Shown one piece after another: positions 3,207 to 55,077 of a stretch of 64,000 nucleotides of DNA. Both the position numbers and the translations under genes were made by a program. Below the pieces are notes generated by a model. The model ran no database searches. It had not been told where the DNA came from and saw nothing but the letters and a program-made list of their open reading frames with translations. The stretch is from positions 124,001 to 188,000 of IMG/VR virus record IMGVR_UViG_3300042514_000542; one strand, written 5' to 3'. The stretch's first letter is position 1, and each line of letters begins with the position of its first letter.

Positions 3207-3237
3207 CAAAAGCCTATCCTAATCGATAGGCTTTTTT
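3207..3237 (+). terminator. Intrinsic terminator
   Basis: aaaa-gcctatc-ctaatc-gataggc-tttttt hairpin with T-tract after stop 3181. Confidence 0.85.
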
Positions 3238-3250
3238 GTTAAATAGTATT

Positions 3251-4063
3251 ATGATACCCTTCAAACAGTTTTTCTTAGAGAATTTCACCAACTCGATAGA
3301 TAATGAATACTTTGAAGCAATCCATAATGATGACTTATCCAAAGTTCAGAATATGGTAGATATAAAAGCCAAAAATATGGGGTATAATGTTAAAGCTTGG
3401 CATGGGACACCTATTGGAGAGTTCGACACCTTTAAATTGAGTAAATCCTTCGGATCTTTATATTTTTTTGCTAAGACCGAAGAATACGCAAAGTATTACG
3501 CCAATAGATTTAAAGGATCACCTAACCCGACAGTTATGGGAGTTTTTTTAAAAATCGAAAATCCGTTAAAGGTTGATAAATTTGAACCAGAGGGTGTTAA
3601 AACGGCATATGAGTTAAGGAAAAAAGGATACGATTCGGTAGAGACACCTAATGCATATATAGTATTTCTACCAGATCAAATAAAATCTGCAAACCCAATC
3701 ACCAAAAAGGGTGATAAAATCATCCCACTATCTAAAAGGTTTAATGTAGAATCTAATCTACTGTCTGAATATCGTCACAATCTTGCTGATGGAACACCAT
3801 CACAATCTATTCAAGCGCATAATGGTAAAGATCCCAACCGTCTAGATAAAAAGATTCTACACACTGTAGGTGATTATAAGAAAGAGAATCCTAAGATGAA
3901 TATTCCGGGTAGTGTTCTAACACCAATGGAATTAGCCGATATGGGAATCACATACGAACATGGTAAAATTTTTCAAAATGTTAAGAATAGTGGATTCGGA
4001 ATTGAGATGACCTCTATTAATGGCAAACCAATGGGTCGAGTATTCAAGTCTCGTATTAAATAA
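3251..4063 (+). CDS. Capsid-targeted protein with ADP-ribosyltransferase-like (ART-PolyVal type) domain
   Basis: MIPFKQFFLE N-terminus; AWHGT...LYFF...VFLKIENPL...KGYDSV...YIVFLPDQIKS pattern; TAAATA 5 nt before ATG 3251. Confidence 0.6.
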   Translation: MIPFKQFFLENFTNSIDNEYFEAIHNDDLSKVQNMVDIKAKNMGYNVKAWHGTPIGEFDTFKLSKSFGSLYFFAKTEEYAKYYANRFKGSPNPTVMGVFLKIENPLKVDKFEPEGVKTAYELRKKGYDSVETPNAYIVFLPDQIKSANPITKKGDKIIPLSKRFNVESNLLSEYRHNLADGTPSQSIQAHNGKDPNRLDKKILHTVGDYKKENPKMNIPGSVLTPMELADMGITYEHGKIFQNVKNSGFGIEMTSINGKPMGRVFKSRIK

Positions 4064-4851: not shown

Positions 4852-6887
4852 ATCATAGATAATGATTGATATAAGGTATCCAAAATGATATGTTCAAACA
4901 CCCCATTCGTATTGAATAGTGTGGAACTCGTTGAAGATGATAGAATTGATGTTTTTGTGTTATTGAAGTCAACAATACCACCAATTGGAGTATTGTCATA
5001 TACATCGACATAATCAAAGAATAGATAGTATTTTTCAATATCGGAGAAATTAAAAGTTGTGGGTAGGATCAAAGCCCAACCCCAATCAGACGAGTATGTT
5101 GAGAGAGGATATGTATGACTACCCAAAGCTGATACTGGTTGATATGTATTAAGTAATGAATATGTATTACTAAATTTCTCAAGCGCAACAATCGGTCTAT
5201 TGGAACTAACCGTATATGTCACTGTGTCGATCACATTCCCAATATTTACCCCAAATTTATCTTTAGTTGTTCTTCCACGAACGTCAAAATTCTCCCTAAA
5301 TTTATTAAGTTCTCCTATGAGTTTTGATCTATCCATCGACATTAAACCCATTATACGTTTGATTTTATTTGGATATACATAATTCTCTTCTCCATAATTA
5401 TTATAACCAATAGATTCCGCTAGAGAATTTAAAAAATCAATCTCAGAATAATCTAAGTCTTGAGTATTATTAACCATATTTGCAATCTTCTCATACATTT
5501 GCACACCAATAGCATCGTGGTCAGAGTTTTCATCCCCAAATATATCCTTAAAGAACGTCTCAAACAGAACAGTCTTATCCTGAAGAGTTTCTTGAAATCT
5601 TAGATCCATAAGAGTTTGAGTGGGATTAAAATCTTCATTAATCTTCCATAAATCGTAATAATTTTTATTATATACATTGAATTCCGTAGAAATACCACTC
5701 AATGTGTAAGAGGATAATTGATCATTTACGAGTGTCGATGAAACTAGAAGTTGAATTGTTTCCAGTTTATCGAAATTCGTATATGGGAATGTAATATAAC
5801 CCCTAAATGCACCGCCATGGTTCTGTGCAGAGAGAGTATAATTAATAGATGATATACTATATTGAGTGGGATCTAGGATATTTCCTGATGATAAAATAGT
5901 AAAAACTATATCAGACTTTTCAACCGGATTAAAGTTTTTAATTGTGAAGTTATATTGATCCTTAACTTTAACAACAAATGGTATCCTAGTATTGAAGAAT
6001 TTAATAGGATTAATATCAAAAGATGTTATATGTGTTCCGTCACCATCCAAACCATTGGATGTTACTGAAAGATATGCTGGAATGTTGTCAACAATATTTG
6101 CAGATAGGGAAATTTTAAGAAGATTCTGATAATTTGTCGTAGTTGCGTTTTTGATTGCTACATTAGACTTATCGAACCAAGTATCTATAACTACTAAATC
6201 GGATATAGAATCATCTTTATAGTATACATCCTTAGTTCCCGACATCCCAACAAAACATGAACCTGAATCATTATCAGAACAATACTCGATTGTATTATTA
6301 ACCACCCTAGCGTAAATAGAAACCTTTGATGGGACTATCTTATCAATTTCAACATATTGATATGCAGAAATGGAATAATTGTATGTTTTTTCATAAAATG
6401 TATGAAAATTCTCAAGATGTTTAAATTTAAAATTCAAGTTCCAATAATTATCGCTATTATTTCCAATTGATGAATAAAATATATTAGTGTGTTGTTGATA
6501 TGGTGGATAGAAACAATCAATAGTCCACGGTCCATATATCTCACCACACTTAATTTCCGACCCGGTTAAAGTTATAGTGTGGGTAAATGTTATAAAGTCG
6601 TATATCGAAACACTTTTAACGACCGTTGATATCATTGCGTTGTTGTTACAGTCATAAACTATAAGAGATACATTGTATATACCCGGATACTCATAATATT
6701 TTGTGGCTGATATCGAAGTTGATGTCGTACCATCACCAAAATCCCAGACCACCCTACGATGTCTATCTAATTCATTTGAATCTGATATAAATATCATTGG
6801 TGTTATGGGTAACGCAAATGATGAGAGCGCATCCACACCTTTATAATCAATAGAACTGAATCCTATATATGTTGTTGTATTATTCAT
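4848..6887 (-). CDS. PKD-domain baseplate/structural protein
   Basis: WDFGDGTTS...YEYPGIYNVSL PKD motif; coupled to gp6-like gene. Confidence 0.7.
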   Translation of the reverse strand: MNNTTTYIGFSSIDYKGVDALSSFALPITPMIFISDSNELDRHRRVVWDFGDGTTSTSISATKYYEYPGIYNVSLIVYDCNNNAMISTVVKSVSIYDFITFTHTITLTGSEIKCGEIYGPWTIDCFYPPYQQHTNIFYSSIGNNSDNYWNLNFKFKHLENFHTFYEKTYNYSISAYQYVEIDKIVPSKVSIYARVVNNTIEYCSDNDSGSCFVGMSGTKDVYYKDDSISDLVVIDTWFDKSNVAIKNATTTNYQNLLKISLSANIVDNIPAYLSVTSNGLDGDGTHITSFDINPIKFFNTRIPFVVKVKDQYNFTIKNFNPVEKSDIVFTILSSGNILDPTQYSISSINYTLSAQNHGGAFRGYITFPYTNFDKLETIQLLVSSTLVNDQLSSYTLSGISTEFNVYNKNYYDLWKINEDFNPTQTLMDLRFQETLQDKTVLFETFFKDIFGDENSDHDAIGVQMYEKIANMVNNTQDLDYSEIDFLNSLAESIGYNNYGEENYVYPNKIKRIMGLMSMDRSKLIGELNKFRENFDVRGRTTKDKFGVNIGNVIDTVTYTVSSNRPIVALEKFSNTYSLLNTYQPVSALGSHTYPLSTYSSDWGWALILPTTFNFSDIEKYYLFFDYVDVYDNTPIGGIVDFNNTKTSILSSSTSSTLFNTNGVFEHIILDTLYQSLSMI

Positions 6888-8694
6888 CTATAACGTCGAT
6901 TCGGTTTGCCATAGAATTTGGCCTATATAAATATGGAAATTTAAAAAATGGAAGGGTGGTTGTTTGGTTGATGAATTCCTCATCAACACCTTCAAATAAT
7001 GGTGTCCAAGCGATGAATGACAATCCATTGAATGACACATTCTGAGATGAATTGACGGTTCTAATACCCTTCACTCCACGTATACTTAAAATTTGTGAGG
7101 TGATGTCTGACATGTCAATCTTTTGACCCAATTTTATATTAGAATTTGAAAAATATTCGGTTAACACAGATAACACCCTAGTTTTCAAATTCTCTGCATT
7201 TAATTTCTCATTCTTCTCTCTAATTATAACAAGTCTAGTATCCAGATATACATTTTTTGATGGATCGGTATTACCAAATCCAAAATCCAATGCGACATAA
7301 ATAGGATCTCTAGGTACGACTTCATTACTAATAATCTTCTTATCATTAGTAATAGTCTTAATTAGAGTTTTAAAATTATCACTAAGGTAATCGGGGTGGT
7401 CGCCATCCGTAGTTAATTCAAAAGTCGGAACACAAAAAACATTAATATTATTAAAATCACATGAATCTGCGAAATTCACCTGATTTAGAATCACTCTATT
7501 CACCTTATTAGGATCTACACATATTTTATAAAAGTAGTCGATATATTCAGATATAAAGGTATTATTATCAACCACTTTAACATCGGATAAAATGTTCGGG
7601 ATTGTTTTCTTGAGATATTTTTCGTAATCCGATTCTGTCACCAATCTCAATTGTGAAGCAAGAAATATGGGAGCATTTTCCCTTATTTGTTCAACATTCT
7701 CCGCATCGTGTATGAGTGTCGAATTCGAGGGATTACTGAATGTTAGGTATGTACCTTCAATATCTGTCAATTGGGATTCATATATATTTGTGGAAATATC
7801 ATCATATATTTCGTTAAATCTCAAACTATTGTAAGTGAAAAGTTTATTACCATTTATAGCATTTTTAGATATCTGCCCCCTTTGTCCATCACTTAGGATA
7901 TAGAATACTGCGACCTGATAACCAGACTGTAGACTCTTACCAAATATACCATTACCAAATTTAACTTCATAATGACCATTTTCATTTAATCTAAGATCAA
8001 ATACTCTATCTAGAGGTGACGATAAAAATAAGCTATCGACCTCTTCATATTCAAACCAAGTATCAGTATCCGACTCTTTAACATATACTGATATTGAGCC
8101 ATGTGATATAAATCGAGTATCCGTTGTGGATACTATATTATCTACAACAATAGTGAAATTTTCATATTCAAGACCTTCCGCCACATAAATCGGATATTCA
8201 CCCACGACCCCTTGATATAAGGATACATTTTTATTGATACTTTCGATAGATTCGACACCACTTGTCGTTTTTTCGAAAGATTCATTACTTGGAAATGTGT
8301 ATTGAATATTATCAATTAAGAAATAGCTATATTTTCTGATTAGGTAATTACCAACACTCAAATTGGAATTAGCCACACAATTTATAGGAACTAGAGATGT
8401 CTGTTTACCTGTAGGTTTATATCCTATAAGCTTAACAATCTTATTCATGTTCTCATATATAGTAGCCTGAGAAAACATTGTTTCAGACGATGTTTGGTTC
8501 AAATAGAACATTAAAACATGTGTGTAATAAGCCAATATATCCATGATACTGGATATATTGCTACCTTCATAATTTTGATCGGTAAACGTCCCACCTTTGT
8601 TTAATTGATCAATCATGAATGATTTCAATGATTGAGCATCAAAGTTTAAATATGCATTTTGCGGGAGGTTGAACTCTAGATTTTGATTATCCAC
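6880..8694 (-). CDS. 6: Baseplate wedge subunit (T4 gp6-like)
   Basis: FTDQNYEGSNISSIMDILAYYTH, IGYKP, YEVKFGNGIFGK, QLRLVTESDY; GTG start. Confidence 0.9.
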   Translation of the reverse strand: MDNQNLEFNLPQNAYLNFDAQSLKSFMIDQLNKGGTFTDQNYEGSNISSIMDILAYYTHVLMFYLNQTSSETMFSQATIYENMNKIVKLIGYKPTGKQTSLVPINCVANSNLSVGNYLIRKYSYFLIDNIQYTFPSNESFEKTTSGVESIESINKNVSLYQGVVGEYPIYVAEGLEYENFTIVVDNIVSTTDTRFISHGSISVYVKESDTDTWFEYEEVDSLFLSSPLDRVFDLRLNENGHYEVKFGNGIFGKSLQSGYQVAVFYILSDGQRGQISKNAINGNKLFTYNSLRFNEIYDDISTNIYESQLTDIEGTYLTFSNPSNSTLIHDAENVEQIRENAPIFLASQLRLVTESDYEKYLKKTIPNILSDVKVVDNNTFISEYIDYFYKICVDPNKVNRVILNQVNFADSCDFNNINVFCVPTFELTTDGDHPDYLSDNFKTLIKTITNDKKIISNEVVPRDPIYVALDFGFGNTDPSKNVYLDTRLVIIREKNEKLNAENLKTRVLSVLTEYFSNSNIKLGQKIDMSDITSQILSIRGVKGIRTVNSSQNVSFNGLSFIAWTPLFEGVDEEFINQTTTLPFFKFPYLYRPNSMANRIDVIDE

Positions 8695-13821: not shown

Positions 13822-14735
13822 ACGTCCTCTAAATTCAACAAACATGCAAAGAAATTAATCTCTTTGTCATTAACACGGGTAGCTTTATCCAAATGGTCGG
13901 CAATGGTAATAATCATTGCCTTCTTTTTTGAATCATCTATGGATTGATCGTAAATATAATTCAATAGATCTACTAAAAGTTGCTCCCAATCAGAGTTGAA
14001 CTGTGCATCGTTTGCAATTAGATGCTTTCTAGTCTCCAAGGACTTCTTAGACACTACATTCTTGAAGACCATATCACATAATTGTGAATTGTTGATAGAT
14101 TCTCCAATAGTTAGAACTCCATTCACACAATGCTTCTGTAGTTCACCAATACACTTTCTTAAATCTGGAAATGATTGCTTAACTAGACGAATTACCTGTT
14201 TCTTCTGATCCTGATCAATTTCAACACCTTCAGACTTGAGAATGTTTAAACATCTAATGACTGTATCTCTCAATGTGGATCTTATGTCAAAACTTTGACA
14301 ACGAGATTGGACGGCAACACTAATTTTATGTCTTGAGTTACCAGTTAGAATGAATCTAGCTGAATTAGCATAAGATTCCATAAGATTTCTCAAACATTTT
14401 TGACCATCTATCGTCAAACCATCCGCTTCATCTAAAATGACAAGCTTCAAATTACCATCCAGACTTTTGGTTTGAACGAATCCGGTGACTTTGTTTCGGA
14501 TAGTATCGATACCATTCTCATCGGATGCATTGATATAAAGATAGTCACAATCCAATATAGTCTGAGCTAAAATTCTAGCTAATGTGGTTTTACCCGATCC
14601 GGGTTTACCTATAAATAATAAGTGAGGAATTTCATTACCCCAACTTAAAATTATCTCTCGTAATTCATCTGATATACAGAGATCATCAAGAGTCTGTGGG
14701 CGGTATTTTTCAATCCAAAGGTTGTCGTATCTCAT
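13818..14735 (-). CDS. 44: Clamp loader ATPase subunit (gp44/RFC small subunit-like)
   Basis: LWIEKYRPQ, GKPGSGKTT, INASDENG, ILDEAD, SRC. Confidence 0.95.
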   Translation of the reverse strand: MRYDNLWIEKYRPQTLDDLCISDELREIILSWGNEIPHLLFIGKPGSGKTTLARILAQTILDCDYLYINASDENGIDTIRNKVTGFVQTKSLDGNLKLVILDEADGLTIDGQKCLRNLMESYANSARFILTGNSRHKISVAVQSRCQSFDIRSTLRDTVIRCLNILKSEGVEIDQDQKKQVIRLVKQSFPDLRKCIGELQKHCVNGVLTIGESINNSQLCDMVFKNVVSKKSLETRKHLIANDAQFNSDWEQLLVDLLNYIYDQSIDDSKKKAMIITIADHLDKATRVNDKEINFFACLLNLEDV

Positions 14736-15466
14736 ATCTCTTTCAGAAAGATATCACGATTGGTTCTTTTGTCAAGAGCGCGAACAAATTCGGCACACTC
14801 CAATAGATCGTCATGTGTGCCACAATCAAACCAAACCCCGTCAAATTCATCAACCCCAACACCCTCTTCCAAATCCATAGCACGAATAAGATCAACTATT
14901 TCCAATTCCCCTCTATGTGATGGTCTGATAGTCTTAGCTAGTTCTACAGCTTTATTGGTGAATACATATAATCCTATAACAGCATCATTACTGACAAATG
15001 TTGAAGGTTTTTCAACTAAATGTGAAATACATCCAAATTCATCACATTTAACCACACCATACGCTGATGGATCTTTAACTTTATATGTGAAAATGGTGTT
15101 TGGTTGGGAATTTAATGGACTACCACCCAAAAATACATTATCACCCAATATCAAAGTAACATCATCATCACCAATAAATTCCTCACCTAGAATAAATGCT
15201 TCAGCTAATCCATTAGCCTCTCCTTGTATCACATATTGGATATTGACACCATATTTTTTACCATAATACAAATATCCTAGAAATATATCTAATTGTTCTT
15301 CTGAAGAAACTATAATTAAAATGTCCTTAATACCCATGTCGATCAAAGTCTTCAATGGGTAAAATATCATTGGTTGTTTATACACTGGTAGTAATTGCTT
15401 ACTAATACCATATGTTAATGGATATAGTCTACTACCCTTACCTCCAGCTAAAATTATTCCTTTCAT
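14732..15466 (-). CDS. rmlA: Glucose-1-phosphate thymidylyltransferase
   Basis: KGIILAGGKGSRLYPLT, SKQLLPVY, LGDN, EKP, RGELEI, WFDCGT. Confidence 0.93.
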   Translation of the reverse strand: MKGIILAGGKGSRLYPLTYGISKQLLPVYKQPMIFYPLKTLIDMGIKDILIIVSSEEQLDIFLGYLYYGKKYGVNIQYVIQGEANGLAEAFILGEEFIGDDDVTLILGDNVFLGGSPLNSQPNTIFTYKVKDPSAYGVVKCDEFGCISHLVEKPSTFVSNDAVIGLYVFTNKAVELAKTIRPSHRGELEIVDLIRAMDLEEGVGVDEFDGVWFDCGTHDDLLECAEFVRALDKRTNRDIFLKEI

Positions 15467-16371
15467 ACTCCTCGAACCCCGTTTATACCATTACAAACCA
15501 TATTCAAAATTTCATCTTCTGTGTGTAGTTTACAAATCTTCGATGCCTTAGTATTATTCAATACACAATTACTTCTAGGTGCTGCTATATTGAGTTCATC
15601 GACAGACACCCAATTCGGGTCGAGTTTTCTCCAATTACCCCCATTCATATAATTCAACTTATCTATCACATTATATGTATCCATTGGCTCCGAATTAACC
15701 ACATTGTAAATGTCTTGCCCTAACCAATCCAAACATTTGGTGATGAGAGCTTCTATAAAATTACACAGATCTGGAATATATGTCTTAGAATTTGTGTAAT
15801 TAACAAGATTTGGATATTTCATGATCTTATTAAGATAATTTCTGGGATTATCTAGATCATTACAGATGGGCATCCTAACTCGAACAATCTTATTGTGTAG
15901 GTGGGATGACCCTAACTCAAATGCATGTTTACTTTTACTATAGAAACTGCTATAGTCGAAAAGACCAAAATCTGGAGTGTCTTTTTCGGTATATTCCTTC
16001 AAATATCCACTATATATACATCCTGAAGAGATGTGGATATATCTAATCCCCAATCTATTACATAATGAATTTATCCTAAGCGGCGATAGAACGTTCAACT
16101 CCCAACACTCTGGTTTACGTGATTCAGCTTCATCTACATTTGGCTTTCCAGTAAACCCAGAACAATTAACCACATAATCAATATTGTGATTTAAAAGGTA
16201 TTTCGAAAGTTCCGATAAATCGTGGTAGTTGATGTGTTTACTACTAATAATCTCCACATTAAATTTACCACTATTCGTAAGATAGTGATGTAGGGCTGAT
16301 CCGATATATCCCGAACCCAAAATACAAATTTTATCCTTCAATGGACTCTTCAATAAATTCTCTGATGTCAT
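15463..16371 (-). CDS. NDP-4-keto-6-deoxyhexose epimerase/reductase (RmlD/NRS-ER-like SDR)
   Basis: LGSGYIG, GFTGKPNVD, SSGCIY, YSKSK catalytic motif; start uncertain. Confidence 0.8.
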   Translation of the reverse strand: MTSENLLKSPLKDKICILGSGYIGSALHHYLTNSGKFNVEIISSKHINYHDLSELSKYLLNHNIDYVVNCSGFTGKPNVDEAESRKPECWELNVLSPLRINSLCNRLGIRYIHISSGCIYSGYLKEYTEKDTPDFGLFDYSSFYSKSKHAFELGSSHLHNKIVRVRMPICNDLDNPRNYLNKIMKYPNLVNYTNSKTYIPDLCNFIEALITKCLDWLGQDIYNVVNSEPMDTYNVIDKLNYMNGGNWRKLDPNWVSVDELNIAAPRSNCVLNNTKASKICKLHTEDEILNMVCNGINGVRGV

Positions 16372-23999: not shown

Positions 24000-24021
24000 A
24001 CAATCACGTTAAATAAACATA

Positions 24022-24843
24022 ATGAGTACTTTCACTAATCAATTCATTTTAAACACATACGGTGGTATATTACACTCAGATGGAGAGTTGAATATTTCCC
24101 AGAAATCGATCATGTATGACGGATTCGGTAACGAATCCGCATTAACATTGGGTCGAAAAAATAATGGGGCTAGTGTTAGTGGTAATTTATCATCAACATC
24201 TTTAAATGTCGGACAATTAACTTTCCCGTCTCTTTCAAGTGATGTCAATAACGTGTTGATACAAAAGGCCGATGGAATTGTGGATTTTTCTGACACCATA
24301 CCATCATCTCTACTCGCAGATCTAAACCCAAATCCAGAAAATGTATATAATACTATAAAGTCCATTACTGTAAATTCTAAAGGTCTTACGACAAAAGTTG
24401 ATACTTGGGGGAGTTCAAATAATACCATAACATCCACAACCTATAAAGAAAATGCTGGAACACCATTTTCAGTAGTCACCGTAACTGCCGATGTATGGAC
24501 AAAGGTGTTTTTAACGGACGCTATACCACCAGAAGATGTTTCTAGCGTTAAAGCTGTTATACTATACGTTGAACCTACAGGTAATTTAGCCGCATATAGA
24601 AAATCATATACGCTAGTTGCATCTCCAAATCAAAGTGATGTGTATCCAATATATCAAGTCATTGGTGGTGAAGATGCGGGGGGTGGAAACGATACTTACG
24701 GTATAGGTGTTCAATGTTCCGTCCGTATTGGAGGAATTGGAACAAATTCAATATACATATACCTTAAAAACCCCATCACAAAAAGTAACTCCGATAATGC
24801 GACTTACTCATTTAATGTTCATTTAATAGCTTATCAACGATAA
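24022..24843 (+). CDS. Tail fibre-like protein
   Basis: DGFGNESALTL; ITVNSKGLTT fibre-shaft motif. Confidence 0.6.
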   Translation: MSTFTNQFILNTYGGILHSDGELNISQKSIMYDGFGNESALTLGRKNNGASVSGNLSSTSLNVGQLTFPSLSSDVNNVLIQKADGIVDFSDTIPSSLLADLNPNPENVYNTIKSITVNSKGLTTKVDTWGSSNNTITSTTYKENAGTPFSVVTVTADVWTKVFLTDAIPPEDVSSVKAVILYVEPTGNLAAYRKSYTLVASPNQSDVYPIYQVIGGEDAGGGNDTYGIGVQCSVRIGGIGTNSIYIYLKNPITKSNSDNATYSFNVHLIAYQR

Positions 24844-24844
24844 T

Positions 24845-25867
24845 ATGCCAAATATAGAAATAGCTAAGTTAAAAACAAGAAGAGGCACGAATAATCAAAG
24901 AAAACGTGTCATCTTTGACCAAGGGGAAATTGTATCTACCGTTGATACTAATAGATTATTCCTTGGAACCGGAACGTTGAGTGGCGGTGTTGTGATAGGT
25001 TCGAAAGTTCATCAACCTATCACTAATTATTCATCATTATCAAATATCGCAGCCGAAGTTGGTGATTTAGCATATGCTAATAATATATTTTACCAGTTAA
25101 CGGCATCACCACCATCAAATATCAACAATTGGATGTCTACTGGAATTAAACTAGACAGTGGATTATTCTCGTATGATTCAGATAATACACTTAGATTAAA
25201 TCTATCCTCTCTATCGGCAGTGCATATCAATCCACTAACCGTATCGAATGGAATTAAGATATCTGGTGGGATTCTTCAAAGCAATTTTAATACAAAATCT
25301 TTAGAAATTTCATCATATCAATTATCCCTAAAGGCTAATGGTATAGATGAAAGAGAGCTAAACTCGACAACTTTTGGTTACGGAATTAGTGGGGGATCAG
25401 GAACTAAAGTAGTTCTGGACGTAAATCCATCACAGTTTCGTTTCAATGGTGATACCCTAAATCTCACGAATTCTACATCCATATCCGCAGTAGATAATTC
25501 ATCATTAATTCTAAGCTCTGGTGTAATATCAGTAAATAATAATGGGGCTTCTGGTAGTTATCAATGGCCAAGAATTGTAGTGGATACTTTCGGTAGAGTG
25601 ACTACAGCAGAATCATCAATATTAGATGTTTTAACAGGTAATGCATCTCTATCAAGCTATAACCGTAATAATTCACTCTCCGCAATATATAATGGTGATT
25701 CTATGGGATTATCATCTATAGCAATAACGAGATTTACTGCACTATCATCCGATGGAACAAGCATTATACATCTTTCATCTGCTGGGTTTATAACATTCGA
25801 AGGAGGGACCACAACAAGGAGTGGAACTTCCGTTGGAAGATTCGCAATCCCAATTTATAGATATTAA
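24845..25867 (+). CDS. Tail fibre protein with Mtd_N-like N-terminal domain
   Basis: RRGT..R....DQGEI....DTNRLFLGTG; VDTFGRVTTA shaft motif. Confidence 0.7.
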   Translation: MPNIEIAKLKTRRGTNNQRKRVIFDQGEIVSTVDTNRLFLGTGTLSGGVVIGSKVHQPITNYSSLSNIAAEVGDLAYANNIFYQLTASPPSNINNWMSTGIKLDSGLFSYDSDNTLRLNLSSLSAVHINPLTVSNGIKISGGILQSNFNTKSLEISSYQLSLKANGIDERELNSTTFGYGISGGSGTKVVLDVNPSQFRFNGDTLNLTNSTSISAVDNSSLILSSGVISVNNNGASGSYQWPRIVVDTFGRVTTAESSILDVLTGNASLSSYNRNNSLSAIYNGDSMGLSSIAITRFTALSSDGTSIIHLSSAGFITFEGGTTTRSGTSVGRFAIPIYRY

Positions 25868-25870
25868 TAT

Positions 25871-26731
25871 ATGGAAATTCTCAACAATACAATTATTAAA
25901 TTAATAGTCCGTCAAGGTGCAAATACTGATCGAAAGTATATTCTTTTGAATTCTGGCGAACCCGCATTTACGACAGATACTCATAGATTTTATGTAGGGA
26001 CTGGTATATTGAGTGGTGGTGTTGTTGTTGGAAATAAATACCAAGGGTCTTCCACAGATGTTACTGGATTTACATCTGCTGTAAATGGAGATGATGCATA
26101 TGATTCCGATAAACACAAACTTTATAAAGTAATTAATGATACTGACACCACTCAACTCTCGAATTGGGAGTATGTTGGGGGTGTTTACTCTTCTGGTGAT
26201 AATTATATTGAAATAAGTAGCGATAATCAGATATCTCTGAATGCGTTATCCGCCAATGCCTTATCTAATGACTTAGTGAAAGGTCCAATTATCTTAGATT
26301 CTGGAAGAATCTCATTATCTGCGACAATTCCTTATCAATCAGTATCTACAAAAACTATAACTATATCTAATGGTTTAAAAGCCACTATTAATGGATTAAG
26401 TGTTACTGGAAACGCAGTTAATGTGTTATCATCCAATCTAGTAGTATCAACCAAGCAATTATTTGCGAGATATAATGGTGTAACCCAAACACTGACAAAC
26501 TATCAGAATATTTCTTCTGTTAACTGGTTATCAGCAGGTCATTATGTGTTCAATTTCGAACCAGTTCTCAGTAATTCCAATTATGTCCCCTTAACGCAAA
26601 TAATTGGAATTAACGGTCTAGGATATCATTCTAGAGTTATATCAACAACCATTTCATCATGTCATGTGGTGATATTGAGTACTAATGAGGCAAAAACCGA
26701 TGTAGATTTATCTCTATTGATTAATTATTAA
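25871..26731 (+). CDS. Tail fibre protein with Mtd_N-like N-terminal domain (paralog of preceding gene)
   Basis: RQGANTDR...GEPAFTTDTHRFYVGTG.LSGGVVVGNK; C-terminal SAGHYVFNF. Confidence 0.7.
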   Translation: MEILNNTIIKLIVRQGANTDRKYILLNSGEPAFTTDTHRFYVGTGILSGGVVVGNKYQGSSTDVTGFTSAVNGDDAYDSDKHKLYKVINDTDTTQLSNWEYVGGVYSSGDNYIEISSDNQISLNALSANALSNDLVKGPIILDSGRISLSATIPYQSVSTKTITISNGLKATINGLSVTGNAVNVLSSNLVVSTKQLFARYNGVTQTLTNYQNISSVNWLSAGHYVFNFEPVLSNSNYVPLTQIIGINGLGYHSRVISTTISSCHVVILSTNEAKTDVDLSLLINY

Positions 26732-26732
26732 T

Positions 26733-27452
26733 ATGTCATTCCCTTCCGATGTTTTATTACCAGTAAATGCGAAATATTTTGGAATTATAGAACCTGATTA
26801 CGCATTCAACCCACATTGGGACTTAACTTGGAGTTTTTCATATGCATTGACTGGAACTGAGCATGGTATCTGTACTTTTCTCTGTGATAATTCAACTGTA
26901 ACATCACCACCCGGACACTATATTGGTTATGGTGGGCTAAGTGCGTCTAAATTTGTATTAGGTGTTGCGTTGGATTCAACTGGGCTTTTCGCATTATCTA
27001 CTAATTACTCTTCAGGTGTCCCCCGTTCGCAAATAAAAAGAGATAGTCTCATTATAAGAGATCAAACCAATAATGTAATTTTTAATCAGTCGCTTTCTAC
27101 ACTGGACTCAACCTTTAACATAGCTACATCAGCGAAAGAATATAAGACAATTCGAATTCGCTACTCCAATGTGGGTAGGAAGATCTATATAGACTATAAA
27201 ATTGGCGATACTAAGTATATAAATCTCACTAGTATTAGTCATATTTCACTAGACACATCAACATACGAAAATCTTTATGTTGGTTTATCATATTCGTCAC
27301 CTATTTCAAGTAGTTCCATAACACCATCAAAAATATGGGTCAAGAACTTCCACATTCAAGGTAATATCGAAAACCCTACATATAATACATTGGCATACAC
27401 ACCGATTTCATCAAATGTAGTTAATTCATTCTCGTCAATTAACATATTCTAA
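26733..27452 (+). CDS. Putative ConA/L-type lectin-fold receptor-binding protein
   Basis: GICTFL...IGYGG...LGVALDSTG...TIRIRY...IYIDY...LYVGLSYS beta-sandwich pattern. Confidence 0.55.
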   Translation: MSFPSDVLLPVNAKYFGIIEPDYAFNPHWDLTWSFSYALTGTEHGICTFLCDNSTVTSPPGHYIGYGGLSASKFVLGVALDSTGLFALSTNYSSGVPRSQIKRDSLIIRDQTNNVIFNQSLSTLDSTFNIATSAKEYKTIRIRYSNVGRKIYIDYKIGDTKYINLTSISHISLDTSTYENLYVGLSYSSPISSSSITPSKIWVKNFHIQGNIENPTYNTLAYTPISSNVVNSFSSINIF

Positions 27453-27551
27453 CACTTTCGGGATTTGTTCAAGGTATAACTAGTCAATCATTTTATAATA
27501 ATTTAATTCACTCTGATGCTTTCGTCACTAGACAAGCATTAAATAACAGAA

Positions 27552-27899
27552 ATGTCTTCTTCTTCTTCTTCGTCTTCCAGTTCTTCCACACCTCCAGTAA
27601 CATTACCACCACCGGTAACACCACCACCGGTAAATTTTGAGTGTACTCCGTGTTATCCACCTATTCCATCCACACCAGAATTCCCACCGAATTTTACACT
27701 ACCGACAACCAAAACAGCACAGCCAGAATTTATTATAACAACACCACCCCCACCAGTTAACCCTCTAACTATAAGTATAAACATAACTACTACTTCAACT
27801 ACAACAACTCAAATAGTGACACCACCAGTGACACTACCACCACTGATAACCCCATCAGTGAAAGAATGTAATGATGGTTGCAATGCTCTAAATTTTTAG
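27552..27899 (+). CDS. Mucin-like Ser/Thr/Pro-rich protein
   Basis: Poly-Ser N-terminus, TPPVTLPP twice, TTTSTTTT, 4 Cys; TAAATA-N6-ATG. Confidence 0.75.
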   Translation: MSSSSSSSSSSSTPPVTLPPPVTPPPVNFECTPCYPPIPSTPEFPPNFTLPTTKTAQPEFIITTPPPPVNPLTISINITTTSTTTTQIVTPPVTLPPLITPSVKECNDGCNALNF

Positions 27900-27909
27900 T
27901 AATTACTCC

Positions 27910-28740
27910 ATGAGGAATCTAACAATTGGAATGGCAACGCATGATGATTTCGATGGGTTGTATTTCACAATTCAAAATATACGTTTGAATCATAAAGAAA
28001 TCTTAGATAAGATAGAATTTGTTATTATTGATAATAATCCAAATAGTAAACATGGTAAGAGTATTCGAAACTTTATGCAATGGATAAAGGAACCCGTCCA
28101 ATATCTTCCCTTCACTAAGTTTCAATCCACTACAGTTAAAAACAAAGTATTCGAACTGGCAGATACGCCATATGTTCTATGTATAGATTCCCATGTTCTA
28201 TTAGAACAAGGTTCTTTGAAAAAACTCATAAATTTCTACGAAAGTGGTAAAGATTATGGTAATTTACTACAAGGTCCATTAGTATATGATGATATGGAAA
28301 ATATTAGCAGTCACTTCGATCTAACTAAATGGGGTGGCAATATGTGGGGTCAATGGGGGTCAGATGATAGGGCTAAAAATCCAAATAATGAACCCTTTGA
28401 AATCCCAGCACAAGGTATGGGTCTTTTTTCCTGCCGTAAAGATGCTTGGTTAGGTTTTAATAAGGAATTTAGAGGATTTGGTGGTGAAGAAGGTTATATT
28501 CACGAAAAATATCGTAAAAATGGTAAAAAAGTTATATGTTTACCCTTTTTACGATGGGTTCATAGGTTTGATCGACCAAATGGAACCACGTATCCAAACA
28601 TTTTGGAGGATAGGTTTCGAAATTATTACATAGGGTTTAAAGAACTTGGTCTTGATACCACAGAACTCTTTGAAAACTTTCCAGAGTTTTCTAATACCGA
28701 AAATCTCAATAAATTAGACTTAGAAATATCCAAATTTTAG
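27910..28740 (+). CDS. GT-A glycosyltransferase with polypeptide GalNAc-transferase-like motifs
   Basis: VIIDN, LCIDSH (DxH), MGLFS, GFGGEE, WVHRF. Confidence 0.8.
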   Translation: MRNLTIGMATHDDFDGLYFTIQNIRLNHKEILDKIEFVIIDNNPNSKHGKSIRNFMQWIKEPVQYLPFTKFQSTTVKNKVFELADTPYVLCIDSHVLLEQGSLKKLINFYESGKDYGNLLQGPLVYDDMENISSHFDLTKWGGNMWGQWGSDDRAKNPNNEPFEIPAQGMGLFSCRKDAWLGFNKEFRGFGGEEGYIHEKYRKNGKKVICLPFLRWVHRFDRPNGTTYPNILEDRFRNYYIGFKELGLDTTELFENFPEFSNTENLNKLDLEISKF

Positions 28741-28967
28741 ATATTTCCCAAGGAAGCTTCACACTCTACATCGTGTAACATAGCTGGAAATCTATCTTTG
28801 ATGTATGATTCGATGGCTAATGGCTTAATCATATCAATAGGATCGACATTTAGATCCTTCGCCTTCTCTTCAATGAAGTGAAATGCCTCAACCAAACACA
28901 TCCATCTGGTAAATTCACCAGTTGTCATTTCTTCCACTATCCCATCACCTCGTTTTATTGTAATCAT
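28737..28967 (-). CDS. Hypothetical protein
   Basis: 76 aa ORF filling the gap, convergent with the GT. Confidence 0.65.
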   Translation of the reverse strand: MITIKRGDGIVEEMTTGEFTRWMCLVEAFHFIEEKAKDLNVDPIDMIKPLAIESYIKDRFPAMLHDVECEASLGNI

Positions 28968-28993
28968 AAGTCCCTATTGTAGTTCGGTTTTAA

Positions 28994-29467
28994 TTAATTA
29001 TTTTTACCAACTAATTCATCAAAGGTCTGCTCAATATTCAATGGTTCCGAAACCAAAACAGTGTTATAGTTGATGTCAACCTTATAATACTGTTTACATT
29101 TTTCACACTGGACTACGTTATCGGTATTTGGTGAAAATAAGCCTTGGAACGTATTACCACCACATACACAAGGAAGTTCTACTAGCAAAGAATCGAAAAT
29201 GTCCTCATAATCGAGGATAACTTTCCTCTGTTCTTCGTCTTTCAGAGAGTGTTCAGCGATAATTAGATCTTGCGTCTTAATAATCTCTTGAGATTCTAAA
29301 TCTGGGCTGTTTTTCTTAAGTAAGAAAGCGCAAACACCCCAAGATATAGGCAAAACAATTGATAATGATCTAACGTAATCATCCAGACCAATTCCATAAG
29401 AGATTAATACCGAAATTGCCGTAGCGATGACAAAATATTGCCAGTTTTGTTTAAGATACTCTGTCAT
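28994..29467 (-). CDS. Two-TM membrane protein with C-terminal Zn ribbon
   Basis: Start MTEYLK after early promoter; two hydrophobic helices; CVC...CEKC. Confidence 0.7.
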   Translation of the reverse strand: MTEYLKQNWQYFVIATAISVLISYGIGLDDYVRSLSIVLPISWGVCAFLLKKNSPDLESQEIIKTQDLIIAEHSLKDEEQRKVILDYEDIFDSLLVELPCVCGGNTFQGLFSPNTDNVVQCEKCKQYYKVDINYNTVLVSEPLNIEQTFDELVGKNN

Positions 29468-29474
29468 TTGAATG

Positions 29475-29502
29475 AGTCTATCAGATTTTCTAAGATTGTC
29501 AA
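29475..29502 (-). promoter_or_regulatory. Sigma70-type early promoter
   Basis: TTGACA-N16-TAGACT, 7 nt before ATG 29467. Confidence 0.75.
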
Positions 29503-29876
29503 TCCATTTCTTCGAAATCGAGGTCACGATCACCTAAATGTCTCGCTCCAATGGTATATTTTTCCAATGTGGAGTCCACGTTTTGTAAAAGATATACGAC
29601 CATCTTCTCTGTATTCTTCTTAAGCTTTAGTAATTGCTTCTTATTCTTAAATTCTTTGGTTTTTAAAGCAACTTCAATGGCCTTACAAGCCTGAATACCA
29701 TTATCTACCATATTTCCATAATATTCTGGAATTTCTGCCATTTCATATGGTAAAACATTCGGACCATAATGGGTTTCTTTTTCTTCAGCTTTCCATTTTC
29801 TCATCTGGGTTCTTGGATCGTGATCGTGATCGATCTCTCCAGATGCAAATTTTGTGGAATATGGTGACTCAGGCAT
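29499..29876 (-). CDS. Hypothetical protein
   Basis: True start MPESPY at 29876 (TAAATA-N5); the longer ORF call overlaps the opposite-strand gene. Confidence 0.7.
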   Translation of the reverse strand: MPESPYSTKFASGEIDHDHDPRTQMRKWKAEEKETHYGPNVLPYEMAEIPEYYGNMVDNGIQACKAIEVALKTKEFKNKKQLLKLKKNTEKMVVYLLQNVDSTLEKYTIGARHLGDRDLDFEEMD

Positions 29877-29913
29877 ACATATATTTAGTTGCCAATGACT
29901 AAATATATAAAGT

Positions 29914-30354
29914 ATGAGTAAATTCGCAAAAAACTTCCTTGAAGTATTAAAAGAAGCAGATCTTGATAGAGATCTTGAGAGACAAGCTATGGAAGGTTCT
30001 CTTGATGACGGTATCGATCCTTCTGAATTCGATACCGATATGGAGATGTCCCCTGAAGAAGCACAAGCCACTGATGAAGTTGCCGATGCTATGTCGAAAC
30101 GTAACCAACAAATCATTTCAGAACTCCAAGGTTGGATTGATCAAGTCGAAGAGTTCCTTAGCTTTCTTAACAGTGAAGATCCTAATAGTGTCCAATCACG
30201 TTTGGCTGCTGCTGAACCAGATACCGTTATGGATAAGATGAAACAGTCTCAACAAACTAAAATTAGTCGTGTTGCATCTGACTTAGCGAGTTTACATCAA
30301 AACTTCCTTGGATTCATGGCTCAAACTTCCAACGCAAGATTTAAATATGTGTGA
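29914..30354 (+). CDS. Acidic putative prohead/internal protein
   Basis: MSKFAKNFLEVLKE; late promoter. Confidence 0.7.
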   Translation: MSKFAKNFLEVLKEADLDRDLERQAMEGSLDDGIDPSEFDTDMEMSPEEAQATDEVADAMSKRNQQIISELQGWIDQVEEFLSFLNSEDPNSVQSRLAAAEPDTVMDKMKQSQQTKISRVASDLASLHQNFLGFMAQTSNARFKYV

Positions 30355-30430
30355 TTTTTGTTGATAATCAACGAGTTATAACTTTCATTAAGAAAACTTC
30401 AACACTTTAGATAAATAATAGTATAATTTT

Positions 30431-30766
30431 ATGAAAAAGAAAGATCAAGAAGCAATTACCAAGTTATATACAGAGGGAGATCATTCCAATGACTATAGAT
30501 GAATGGATGATGATTCTTCGGAGTATGATTCATCCAATTTATATTATCCCTCGGATGAGGAAGAACAATTAAAACGTGGATTGATACCAGTTGGAGGGAT
30601 AATTAGAGCTTTGAAAGCTGCGAACTTACCTAACAAAAATATTTTGAATTATTTTATAGATATTACATCCGATGATTATGATGATGGTATGATTAATAGA
30701 ATAGCAGAGGTTATCCTATCAACTGGGAAGTTCAATTTATCCATTGAAGATCTTGAAAATTTTTAA
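30431..30766 (+). pseudogene. Head-protein-like gene interrupted by an in-frame TGA (30500-30502)
   Basis: MKKKDQEAITKLYTEGDHSNDYR*MDDD... in one frame. Confidence 0.6.
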
Positions 30767-30767
30767 C

Positions 30768-31844
30768 TCATAACTTTCCAAACAAAATCTTAAATTTAAC
30801 AATAGCACCTTTACCACAGGTGCTATTTGCTTTTAGAAACCCATGTTTAATCTCATCAAGTCCACAATGAATACACAATTCATTAAAGTCTTTAAACTCT
30901 TTAAACTTCTCGGGCCAAATAAAGACACACTCTCCCATCTCTAGAAGAACTTGAGTCTTTAATCGAGATGCTTTATCAATCCATTGGTTATCTAATACCC
31001 AAATCTTATTAAAAAGCTTCAGTTCTTCTAGTTGATCTAACTGAATTGGTGTGAACTTGTGGTGTCCTTCATTGATACCTGCCACAGCCACTCCATTTCG
31101 CACAAAACAGGCATCTAGGGGGCCTTCAAAGATGAAAACGTCATCTAGTGCTGAATCGATCCTATCTATCCCAAAAATCGATTTGTCGGAGTTGAATTTA
31201 GATATGTAATTGGGTTTCTCATCCCATTCAAACAATCTTCTCGACTGATAGTGAATAAAATTACCGGAAGTGTCTAAAAATGGTATCGTTAACCTATTCT
31301 TATGACTATAATCCTTAAGAGATATGTAAAAATTACATCTATTGATTGCCGTATCTAATCTACGACTCTTAATATAAGTCAAAGCTGTCTGAACTATGTG
31401 ATTATCCTTATAAAACTCCCTCTGAGTGGGATCACTAAGGTTAATACTATCGTCAGGTAGAGATGGCTGCTTCTTTCGTTGAATTGGCTCATCAAAATTC
31501 AATTCAACTGACACTTCATTGTTACCAACGTCCTTACGGATCTGTTCATCTGTCATTCCAGAGACTTTTCGTATCCAATTATAGGGTTTTAGACTTGAAC
31601 CGCAGTTATGACAGAAAATATTGTCATCTTTGGGAATATAGAAACATCTTTTCTTATTCCCCCAACTCTTACCCTCTTTACAGATGGGACAACAAGAGTT
31701 ATATACGTTCGTATAGTTATTATAGGATACTTTATACCCCAATTCGTAAAATTTAGCTACAACATAATCATTCGGAAGATCGAACGACTTCTTTGTTGTG
31801 GATGAATTGAGCTTTGGAAGTTTTTTTAACAGGCTTGGGTGCAT
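30768..31844 (-). CDS. 61: DNA primase (T4 gp61-like)
   Basis: CPIC...CHNCG zinc finger, FEGPLD TOPRIM, KDFNEL. Confidence 0.92.
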   Translation of the reverse strand: MHPSLLKKLPKLNSSTTKKSFDLPNDYVVAKFYELGYKVSYNNYTNVYNSCCPICKEGKSWGNKKRCFYIPKDDNIFCHNCGSSLKPYNWIRKVSGMTDEQIRKDVGNNEVSVELNFDEPIQRKKQPSLPDDSINLSDPTQREFYKDNHIVQTALTYIKSRRLDTAINRCNFYISLKDYSHKNRLTIPFLDTSGNFIHYQSRRLFEWDEKPNYISKFNSDKSIFGIDRIDSALDDVFIFEGPLDACFVRNGVAVAGINEGHHKFTPIQLDQLEELKLFNKIWVLDNQWIDKASRLKTQVLLEMGECVFIWPEKFKEFKDFNELCIHCGLDEIKHGFLKANSTCGKGAIVKFKILFGKL

Positions 31845-35004: not shown

Positions 35005-35079
35005 ATTCTTATTATTGTTTTAGTTTATTTTCTAGTTTTGTTTGTTTTGTTTGAAGGTTTTCACCTTCAAAAGTATTTA
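35005..35079 (-). promoter_or_regulatory. Gene 32 leader: promoter, GAAA-tetraloop hairpin and unstructured A-rich tract
   Basis: TAAATA 35074-35079; stem 35050-35071; A/C-rich 45 nt up to the ATG. Confidence 0.6.
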
Positions 35080-35770
35080 ACGTAAGTTTTAAATTATTCA
35101 ATCTCGCTTCTCTCATTTTTTGTTTTGTCTCTTCAGAATGCTTATAACCTAATCTGGCAGTTCTTGCATTTTCTTTATGCTCTTCCGACAAAGGTTTTCC
35201 TATTTTCGATTCTCTAATTTTAATCTTTGTTTCTTCCGACATTTGTTTTCCCATTTTCGAGATTCTCATCTTTTCTTTCGACTCTTCGGTATGTTTCCGT
35301 CTTCGACACTTTTCTTTGAAAGAATCAGATTTTGGTTTTTTCATTTTATTTTTTGTATATTCCGAATGTTTCTTACCCCTTTGACCTTCACTCATTCTTT
35401 TCCGAACTTCTTCAGAGCATTTATATCCAGTTCTATCAGTTGAATATTTACAGATATTATATCCTATATTTCTATCGGTGGAATTATAGATTCCAATATA
35501 ATGAGCCTCTCTATCAAAAAGTTTTTCTTTATCTAAATTTTTATTAAAATTTTCAAATATTTCTAGTATATCTATTTCAAAATTTTCCCACCCATATTTA
35601 ATCAATGCATTTTCAAAATGAAATCGTCCAAATTTTCTATTACAACACGATTTATGATACGACAATCTATTATAGATATTTACGGATTTACCTATATATA
35701 TTTTACCACTTACTATACAGACAAGTTTATATATTCCCGCCTTCTTTGGTATTTCCATTGTTTGATTCAT
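35012..35770 (-). mobile_element. GIY-YIG homing endonuclease with NUMOD3 repeats (Seg-like)
   Basis: GIYKL...IYIGKS, GYN, HSEETKQKM repeats. Confidence 0.92.
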
Positions 35771-53967: not shown

Positions 53968-54343
53968 CGCTCATTTCATTTTCATAAACCATCTGTTTAT
54001 ATTCTTCCAGACCTTCGTGTTGTCTATTCTCTTTCTTGATACGATTGGAAAATGCATTCCATGCAATCTGATTGAAGTATGAGAATGGATTGAATTCTGA
54101 TTCAATCTTAAATTTCTTATCTTCCAATGCTGAATACATCTTCAAAATGGCATCACCCACCATCTCATCTTTCCATGTGTAATTGATAAACCTATAATTA
54201 TAACTAAGACCTTCAGCAATCTTAACTATGTTCAAGGCTAGTTCATTCGACATTACATCATCCTCGTAGTATTTCTCCAATTGCTGGCGAAATAGTTTTG
54301 ATGACACATAATACTTCTCTTTAACGTCTTTATTTGTTATCAT
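53897..54343 (-). CDS. 55: Late transcription sigma factor (gp55)
   Basis: KIAEGLS...FINYTWKDEMVGDA, NPFSYFNQIAWNAF..RIKKE. Confidence 0.93.
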   Translation of the reverse strand: MITNKDVKEKYYVSSKLFRQQLEKYYEDDVMSNELALNIVKIAEGLSYNYRFINYTWKDEMVGDAILKMYSALEDKKFKIESEFNPFSYFNQIAWNAFSNRIKKENRQHEGLEEYKQMVYENEMSDASQGSVYVRPMLEHDSEDGCYD

Positions 54344-55077
54344 AATTCTTTATTCTTTCTTGGTCGTTTACTTCCACTATTTCTTAACCTGCTCGCCTCA
54401 CCTATTCTTTTTCTAGTTTCTTCTGAATGGGTGTATGTAGAATTTTTTCTTGATTCTCTCATCTTTTCCTTTGTCTCTTCTGATAGAGGGATTCCCACCT
54501 TAAGTTGTCTCAATTTTTCTTTAGTTTCTTCACTCGTCTTATACCCCAATCTTACATTTCTCATTTTTTCCTTGGTTTCATCCGATACTTTCCTCCCCAA
54601 ATTAGACTTTCTATTTTTTTCATTAGATTCTTTTGAATGGTGTTTACCTATTCTCGAAAGCCTTATTTTTTCTCTAGTTTCTTCGGATTTTGGTTTCCTC
54701 ATTTTTTCTTTAGATTCTTCTGAATGATAATATCCGGTTCTATCTCGGGAATATTTGCATATATTATAACCTATATCATTATTTGTAGAATCTAGTAGTG
54801 ATATATAATGAGATTCTAGTTCTAATAGATCCGTATTATCTTTAAATTTATCAAAATTTTCATAGATCTCTAATATCTCAATAGTGAATGAATTCCATCC
54901 ATATTTTTTAATAACGTGTTGTAAATAACACTTGCCTTGCTTTTTATTTTCACAATATTTATGAGATATAAATCTATTTTTCAGGTTTATCGATTTTCCC
55001 ACATATATCTTATTTGTCACACCACATGTTAATTTATATACTCCAGCAACATTTTTATATTCAGAATAATTATTCAT
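54340..55077 (-). mobile_element. GIY-YIG homing endonuclease with NUMOD3 repeats
   Basis: GVYKL...IYVGKS, GYNICKYS, SEETKEK repeats. Confidence 0.92.

Follow-up and report, generated by a model that had tools for sequence, protein, structure and literature searches.

A gene pair of an uncultured phage, encoding a GT27-like glycosyltransferase and a threonine-rich, mucin-like protein, is a candidate protein O-glycosylation cassette

Does a phage glycosylate a mucin-like protein of its own? The question is raised by two adjacent genes in the uncultured phage recorded as IMGVR_UViG_3300042514_000542 (206.6 kb), of which a stretch of 64 kb, referred to here as the window, was analysed. The first gene encodes a 115 aa protein rich in Ser, Thr and Pro and the second a 276 aa glycosyltransferase, and the initial annotation of this DNA had read the pair as an initiating protein O-glycosyltransferase next to its mucin-like acceptor. 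To our knowledge, very few phages have been documented to bear glycosylated particle proteins, and mucin-type O-glycosylation is held to be a process of eukaryotes. The findings reported here support the initial proposal, in that the enzyme is predicted to have a fold like that of the GT27 polypeptide N-acetylgalactosamine (GalNAc)-transferases and its gene is linked, in most of the related loci examined, to a gene for a Thr-rich protein with a common C-terminal tag; glycosylation and a place for the product in the virion are what these findings would suggest. Hence, we consider it reasonably probable that the pair is a late-expressed cytoplasmic O-glycosylation cassette, in which the GT27-like enzyme glycosylates a hypervariable mucin-like protein that is docked or marked by its tag.

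The coordinates of all features are listed in Table 1. The 115 aa protein includes, as described in the initial annotation, a run of 11 Ser, two copies of TPPVTLPP, a TTTSTTTT tract and two pairs of Cys, one in ECTPC and one in ECNDGC. Its last residues are CNALNF. Ser, Thr and Pro together make up 55 % of the protein, and its open reading frame (ORF) is the only real one in the window with such a composition. The two TPPVTLPP copies are part of a 39 nt DNA repeat that is 82 % identical. As also noted before, the enzyme gene follows closely, the stop codon at 27897–27899 and the ATG at 27910 being separated by 10 nt. No signal peptide or membrane segment was found in the 115 aa protein or in the 276 aa enzyme, and neither protein has a match in PHROGs or NCBIfam.

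The C-terminal tag of the 115 aa protein recurs in a family of 59 distinct proteins, which range in length from 93 to at least 1995 aa (about 2000 aa) and are found as up to three tandem paralogues per locus. A Thr run precedes the tag in family members, and position −5 of the tag, which was left free in the search pattern, is N or K in 55 of the 59. The bodies of the tagged proteins are mutually unrelated (one includes a beta-helix segment), and the conserved part of the family is the tag only, a Thr-rich tract also being common. Within the window, the tag is present in a single ORF, that of the 115 aa protein. It is likely to be a docking or recognition element. A reading of the phage protein as a glycocin or other precursor of a peptide that is made by the ribosome and modified after translation (RiPP) was rejected, as members of the family reach about 2000 aa and have no leader, and the enzyme has no RiPP recognition element (RRE).

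The enzyme gene encodes LCIDSH, IPAQGMGLFS, GFGGEE and LPFLRWVHRF, in the order in which the initial annotation had listed them. Residues 6–165 match Pfam PF00535 (GT2) with 35.6 bits, the gathering cutoff being 23.3, and in public annotations the protein is either ‘hypothetical’ or a generic cell-wall glycosyltransferase. A search of the Protein Data Bank (PDB) with the single sequence returned only noise (e.g. EcfA and flavodoxin), and a profile built from 42 sequences matched TarP (E 3e-7), chondroitin synthase and TarS, over the N-terminal halves only. The residues that are invariant in the 42 homologues are D93 and H95 (D93-x-H95, here D93-S-H95), G191 and E194 in GFGGEE, and H218 in WxHRF. 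When a profile of the C-terminal half was compared to the PDB, the single sequence match was GalNAc-T7, with an E value of 0.53 that is not significant alone, in an alignment that pairs PFEIPAQGxGLF with PYRSPAMAGGLF, GFGGEE with (I)WGGEN and LRWxHRF with SRVGHIY, and places H218 opposite the His of VGHIY. Three of the motif correspondences to GT27 proposed initially thus reappear in this alignment, and significant similarity to GT27 sequences was not found. The only recurrent weak Pfam match, below threshold in 17 of 38 members, is to PF02709 (Glyco_transf_7C), which covers the matching region in the GT7 and GT27 families. The metal-site motif of the enzyme is DxH, as against the DxD typical of GT2, and from their order in the sequence D93-x-H95 and H218 appear to correspond to the DxH and Mn-binding His motifs of GT27.

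An AlphaFold2 model of the enzyme (predicted local distance difference test score, pLDDT, 95.5; predicted template modelling score, pTM, 0.92) is a single GT-A domain, in which the first strand is formed by residues 4–10 and the N-terminus is not hydrophobic. No lectin domain, membrane anchor or type II topology was found in either the ORF or the model, in agreement with the earlier statement that a ricin lectin domain is missing. When the model was compared to the PDB using Foldseek, all 50 matches listed were GT27 enzymes (E 7e-14 to 3e-11, template modelling (TM) score 0.61–0.74), namely GalNAc-T1, T2, T4, T7, T10 and T12, PGANT9 from the fly and TgGalNAc-T3 from Toxoplasma, with alignments of about 300 columns and 13–17 % identity. 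Not one of these 50 matches was a glycan- or DNA-acting GT2 structure, so that the structural comparison that the initial annotation had suggested favours peptide-acting enzymes. Because all the matches listed belong to GT27, every non-GT27 chain in the PDB scores worse than E ~3e-11. Among predicted viral structures there was one true relative (30 % identity, TM 0.86), the remainder being generic GT-A folds with E values of 1e-11 or weaker. Families in CAZy are defined by sequence. The fold and the DxH/distal-His motif fit GT27. The enzyme has neither significant similarity to GT27 sequences nor their lectin domain, membrane anchor and membrane topology, and for this reason it is described here as GT27-like in architecture and not as a demonstrated member of GT27.

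Homologues of the enzyme form more than 2,600 clusters in metagenomes, and the best 120 listed are 68–87 % identical to it. Among 82 phage loci collected via the enzyme, 63 include a tagged Thr/Ser/Pro-rich ORF within 60 bp of the enzyme gene. In L001, L002 and L199 the orientation of the enzyme gene is opposite to that of the fibre cluster, and the gene still abuts the 3′ end of the tagged gene, which in L001 (6001–7463) it overlaps by 28 nt. The Thr-rich gene of L001 also contains a run of N, probably an assembly gap in a repeat. A second sample, free of selection for the enzyme, was assembled by fetching 80 loci via the conserved gene upstream of the pair, which encodes a 239 aa protein, and then removing duplicates; an alignment served as query, as a locus search with the single 239 aa protein had found only the contig of the window itself. 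In this sample 28 loci include both genes (no more than 60 bp apart in 27), nine include the enzyme gene only and five the tagged gene only, and the two genes are thus linked in 27–28 of the 37 enzyme-bearing loci. Conservation of the pair in relatives, put forward initially as a check, was therefore seen in two samples anchored on different genes, and the linkage in phages is strong but not absolute.

Relatives of the enzyme are not confined to phages. An exhaustive search yielded 1,695 representative clusters, many about 50 % identical to the phage enzyme and present as domains in proteins of 400–1350 aa, and a scan of reference genomes located homologues in Alpha-, Gamma- and Deltaproteobacteria, Bacteroidota, Planctomycetota, Acidobacteriota, Chloroflexota and other phyla. 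The bacterial domains are fused to PqqD, which is a peptide-binding element of RiPP pathways, or to HprK-related kinase A, TPR, GT25, sulfotransferase, epimerase or cytidylyltransferase domains, and in two cultured genomes a PF14907 nucleotidyltransferase gene adjoins that of the homologue. In 28 of 76 bacterial loci a small ORF, usually 1–3 kb upstream of the enzyme domain and on the same strand, encodes a twin-arginine-type leader, the motif LPxxWxKPVVxxVxxPAHA and, in the majority, a Thr-rich tail, which consists largely or almost wholly of Thr. Downstream of five such ORFs with near-pure poly-Thr or poly-Ser-Thr tails (Table 1) are genes for multidomain proteins in which HprK-related kinase A or PqqD is combined with the glycosyltransferase domain. 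No NCBIfam model matches the bacterial poly-Thr ORFs. The bacterial ORFs do not carry the phage tag and the phage proteins do not carry the leader; likewise, no PqqD/RRE domain was found in the phage enzyme, both this domain and the leader being seen in the bacterial systems only. Apart from the Thr tract, the neighbours of the enzyme in phages and those in bacteria have no feature in common, and of the indirect arguments for an action of the family on Thr-rich polypeptides this shared tract is the strongest. Judged by their gene content, the bacterial loci look like an undescribed leader-guided system of peptide modification and export.

The initial annotation had assigned the Thr-rich gene to a late promoter. 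The late-promoter consensus of T4, TATAAATA, is not enriched in the window and is absent upstream of the Thr-rich gene; what is present is TAAATAA, 12 nt before the start of the gene, a motif that is positionally enriched at structural genes. Of the 32 copies of TAAATAA in the window, 13 lie 11–13 nt before start codons, mostly those of structural genes, where 0.05 would be expected (P ~2e-28), and these 13 include the sites at 2245, 4057, 16610, 24010, 27540 and 58371. The glycosyltransferase gene is not preceded by a copy of its own and is for this reason probably co-transcribed with the Thr-rich gene. Scans for sigma-70 promoters and terminators were uninformative. The position of TAAATAA suggests either a late-promoter-like or a translation-initiation signal. 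Hardly any space remains for a Shine-Dalgarno sequence, and the motif may be a late promoter that yields near-leaderless mRNAs or, alternatively, an AT-rich initiation signal of the kind used by Bacteroidota, which would hint at the host.

From the gene anatomy, the fold of the predicted model, the conserved catalytic residues and the gene linkage in both phages and bacteria, we infer that a distant T4-like marine myovirus would have in these two genes a cassette for protein O-glycosylation that is co-transcribed and expressed late. The enzyme would be a soluble, cytoplasmic, Mn-dependent GT-A glycosyltransferase, with a metal site made up of DxH and the distal His and with a WGGE-type motif, that moves a sugar from a nucleotide-sugar donor to Thr/Ser hydroxyls in the Thr/Pro-rich tract of the protein encoded upstream. 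Its acceptors would be the members of a hypervariable family, 93 to about 2000 aa long and present in each phage as one to three paralogues, that have in common only a Thr tract and a Cys tag of about 12 residues, and the tag would probably dock the glycoprotein on the tail-fibre/baseplate apparatus or mark it for the enzyme. The mucin-like protein is probably virion-associated, and the virion would in the end bear a mucin-like filament coated with glycans. The TAAATAA motif at −12, which the cassette shares with structural genes, and the nucleotide-sugar enzymes encoded by the phage are supporting points.

The latter enzymes, one RmlA-like and one RmlD-like (Table 1), are encoded by genes that adjoin the clamp-loader gene; neither RmlB nor RmlC was noticed in the window. 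A connection between the RmlA/RmlD-like enzymes and the glycosyltransferase is possible. By means of these enzymes the phage can act on the pool of nucleotide sugars, and the donor may thus be other than UDP-GalNAc. A role of GalNAc as donor is unsupported, and dTDP-sugars may be available.

Several findings weigh against this interpretation. Glycosylation is proposed on the basis of fold, sequence and linkage, and Thr/Pro-rich linkers also occur unglycosylated. By sequence the enzyme belongs to GT2 only, with TarP as the best profile match in the PDB; no GT27 chain was retrieved from the PDB at E ≤10 using either the single sequence or the full-length profile, the E value of the GalNAc-T7 alignment is only 0.53, and the margin over GT2 structures is bounded only by the 50 fold matches listed. 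The assignment to a fibre cluster depends on weak matches. As to the exceptions to linkage, the nine enzyme loci without a tagged gene fall mostly in one clade (L200–L205, enzymes 54–56 % identical) and one has a variant tag, and in the five loci with a tagged gene alone no enzyme gene is found within the following 1.2–4.6 kb.

The nine loci without a nearby tagged gene, a clade that must use another acceptor, bear on the possibility that the enzyme does glycosylate proteins, as in mycobacteriophages, and acts mainly on virion proteins other than the tagged ones, such as fibres, the lectin-fold protein, capsid or tail, the tagged genes being mere neighbours in the same variable module. In L200–L205, L222 and L223 the enzyme gene (product 54–64 % identical) directly follows the gene for the lectin-fold protein and no tagged gene was found in the region fetched; here the acceptor must be elsewhere or different. 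Some of the larger fibre-module proteins also have Thr runs, and glycans on the C-termini of capsid and tail-tube proteins of virions are reported (Freeman et al. 2023, as cited in PMC12619734). Nevertheless, the only strongly Thr/Pro-rich protein in the window is the adjacent one of 115 aa, and the neighbour in bacteria is nearly pure poly-Thr, and we regard this possibility as unlikely.

The sequence matches to GT2 raise the question of whether the enzyme is an ordinary GT2 glycosyltransferase that modifies a glycan, for example, in the course of infection, a polymer of the host envelope such as teichoic acid, lipopolysaccharide or capsule, next to a Thr-rich protein that is an unglycosylated flexible fibre or linker. 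Besides the Pfam match, the best profile matches are to TarP (a prophage-encoded GlcNAc-transferase for wall teichoic acid), chondroitin synthase and TarS. Pathways for polysaccharides typically include RmlA/RmlD-like genes, and envelope-modifying glycosyltransferases are frequent in marine phages (PMC12801897). However, these sequence matches are confined to the nucleotide-binding N-terminal half, and over the whole domain the closest folds are those of the peptide-acting GT27 enzymes. The adjacency to tagged genes irrespective of orientation, the poly-Thr ORFs of bacteria and the fusions to PqqD and kinase domains would be left unexplained, and the gene is located in the late structural operon of a phage of lytic type. 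We consider a glycan acceptor improbable. That the gene serves to glycosylate modified bases in the phage DNA, as an anti-restriction measure in the manner of T4, is very improbable, for although the phage is T4-like and viral glycosyltransferases are known to hypermodify DNA (Pyle et al. 2024, as cited in PMC12619734), its location is among the structural genes of the + strand, behind a motif of the structural type and with the replication genes on the other strand, the fold of the enzyme is closest to peptide-acting enzymes and its bacterial homologues are fused to peptide-handling domains. All three of these explanations account for the double linkage to Thr tracts less well than does glycosylation of the tagged protein.

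The gene upstream of the pair, which is syntenic in relatives, encodes the 239 aa protein, predicted to be a legume-lectin/concanavalin-like beta-sandwich. Its model (pLDDT 79.9) matches L-type lectins in Foldseek (E ~2e-7, TM ~0.5), and several of the matching structures are lectins in complex with the Tn antigen (GalNAc-Ser/Thr), a similarity at the level of the fold only. On the strength of the model, which agrees with a receptor-binding module, a fibre-tip or carbohydrate-binding protein of the same module is probable, and it might bind either the glycosylated neighbour or a host glycan. Two fibre-like proteins of 340 and 286 aa are encoded before it and have sub-threshold matches to PF18454 (Mtd_N; E 8e-4 and 2e-4) and to a PHROG tail-fibre family (E 1e-3). 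The large ORFs at 16.6–24 kb have no PHROG or Pfam match. The genes downstream of the enzyme gene are on the opposite strand, making it the last gene of the + strand structural block. The earlier statement that the pair ends a tail-fibre cluster is thus plausible, in view of the Mtd_N and tail-fibre matches, the lectin-fold neighbour and the strand switch, on evidence that is weak.

By its gene content the phage is a distant T4-like myovirus, and we place it among the marine T4-like myoviruses. A large terminase of the T4 type and proteins like the gp6 baseplate wedge, gp44 clamp loader and gp32 are encoded, together with a RecA/UvsX-like protein, a DnaB-type helicase, an SbcCD-like nuclease and a family B DNA polymerase that is only about 30 % identical to gp43 of cyanomyoviruses. 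The ‘moraphage’ jumbo lineage (PMC12619734) was set aside, as the genes for replication and packaging found here are of the T4 type. The G+C content of the window is about 34 % and no tRNA genes were found in it. Neither megablast of positions 24000–31000 nor tblastn of the enzyme returned a match among 50,697 GenBank phage records, and no sequenced isolate of this phage group is among those records. Two homing endonuclease genes sit amid the replication genes, and a gene located between those for terminase and baseplate encodes an ART-PolyVal ADP-ribosyltransferase domain (Table 1). Two contigs from bacterial metagenome-assembled genomes (MAGs) include the short phage type of the enzyme, namely L084 (Flavobacterium sp., 3.6 kb; enzyme 74 % identical) and L151 (Nisaea sp., 13.8 kb), which has an ORF for a Thr-rich protein of about 2000 aa directly upstream. 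Both contigs probably derive from phages and were assigned to MAGs in binning, and as a hint to the host the Flavobacterium bin of L084 is weak at best.

Table 1. Features of the gene pair, of the surrounding window and of related bacterial loci
Feature	Position	Strand	Basis
TAAATAA motif, 12 nt upstream of the start of the Thr-rich gene	27540–27546	+	Positional enrichment
115 aa mucin-like protein, candidate O-glycosylation acceptor	27552–27899	+	ORF, composition, linkage
C-terminal tag CNDGCNALNF	27867–27896	+	Family signature C-x(3-9)-C-[N/K]-x-L-x-[F/Y/W]-COOH
276 aa soluble GT-A glycosyltransferase, GT27-like fold (predicted)	27910–28740	+	PF00535, AlphaFold2 model, Foldseek, invariant residues
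Key codons of the enzyme gene	D93/H95 28186–28194; GFGGEE 28474–28491; H218 28561–28563	+	
239 aa conserved protein, predicted legume-lectin/concanavalin-like beta-sandwich	26733–27452	+	AlphaFold2, Foldseek, synteny
Two fibre-like proteins (340 and 286 aa), Mtd_N-like N-termini	24845–26731	+	Sub-threshold Pfam/PHROG
RmlA-like sugar-1-phosphate (glucose-1-phosphate) thymidylyltransferase	14732–15466	−	PF00483, E 4e-53; TIGR01207, E 9e-73, below equivalog cutoff
RmlD-like reductase/epimerase	15463–16371	−	PF04321/TIGR01214, E 3e-19
gp6-like baseplate wedge gene	6880–8694		
ART-PolyVal ADP-ribosyltransferase domain protein	3236–4063	+	PF18760, E 1.5e-12
Group I intron-type homing endonuclease gene, first of two	35012–35770	−	TIGR01453, E 7e-31
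Group I intron-type homing endonuclease gene, second of two	54340–55077	−	TIGR01453, E 2e-28
Bacterial ORFs, leader + near-pure poly-Thr or poly-Ser-Thr	L102:4514–4906; L143:4519–4902; L145:2174–2593; L163:4579–4998; L088:4064–4561		

Among systems already described, the eukaryotic GT27 enzymes (e.g. human GalNAc-T2, PDB 2ffu/4d0t) provide the closest solved fold for the whole domain (about 300 columns, TM 0.73), with DxH, a putative WGGE-type motif and a distal His in the same order and an acceptor that is, as presumed for the phage enzyme, Thr/Pro-rich. The phage enzyme differs in being only 13–17 % identical, in having no ricin-type lectin domain, membrane anchor or stem, and in being phage-encoded and cytoplasmic rather than in the Golgi. 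TarP (PDB 6h1j), TarS and the chondroitin polymerase K4CP, GT2 enzymes that act on glycan polymers and typically have a DxD motif, resemble it in the N-terminal nucleotide-sugar half and as soluble GT-A enzymes, TarP also in being prophage-encoded, but are absent from the 50 structural matches listed, and the C-terminal half of the phage enzyme has no GT2 match. The RiPP-type systems (PqqD/RRE-guided pathways, HprK-like lasso-peptide kinases and the GT2 S/O-glycosyltransferases of glycocins such as SunS) recall the bacterial homologues, with their PqqD and HprK fusions and nearby ORFs for a leader and a Thr core; in contrast, neither an RRE nor a kinase domain is part of the phage enzyme, and its partners reach about 2000 aa and have the C-terminal tag in place of a leader. 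With phage systems for virion glycosylation the pair shares the linkage of a phage glycosyltransferase gene to structural genes. In mycobacteriophages, phage glycosyltransferases are reported and are presumed to decorate virion proteins with O-linked glycans, which are on the C-termini of capsid and tail-tube subunits of actinobacterial siphoviruses (Freeman et al. 2023, via PMC12619734 and PMC12801897); in contrast, the candidate acceptor here is a separate, hypervariable, mucin-like protein with a Cys tag, the phages are T4-like marine myoviruses and the fold is GT27-like.

A literature search found no description of this pairing of enzyme and Thr-rich protein, and nothing relevant was found in the literature on GT27-like phage enzymes, mucin-like phage glycoproteins or systems with HprK-related kinases. 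Hence, the pair is probably a previously undescribed protein-glycosylation cassette. It is of a known kind, virus-encoded protein glycosylation, and may extend to a prokaryotic counterpart of mucin-type glycosylation. A more far-reaching interpretation, which we advance tentatively and hold to be somewhat less probable than not, is that mucin-type O-glycosylation by a lectin-less relative of GT27 is widespread in prokaryotes in a form so far undescribed, of which the cassette would be the phage arm. Bacterial forms fused to RRE/PqqD or HprK domains would act on exported leader-poly-Thr peptides, and T4-like marine phages would have captured the bare catalytic domain to put glycans on hypervariable, tagged poly-Thr virion filaments, possibly read or held by the lectin-fold protein.

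If this is true, the catalytic core of mucin glycosylation in animals would have prokaryotic or viral relatives that act on the same kind of substrate. The cassette would be compact and easily tested, consisting as it does of a soluble enzyme of 276 aa and a candidate acceptor of 115 aa, and the enzyme could serve as a simple tool for making mucin-like glycopeptides by bacterial expression. The parallel system of bacteria suggests a class of secreted peptides with modifications that is as yet uncharacterised. The phage-type homologues are from an abundant group of large T4-like marine phages, and in these a glycan-coated, hypervariable filament would bear on host recognition, on stickiness in marine organic matter and on escape from recognition by hosts or grazers.

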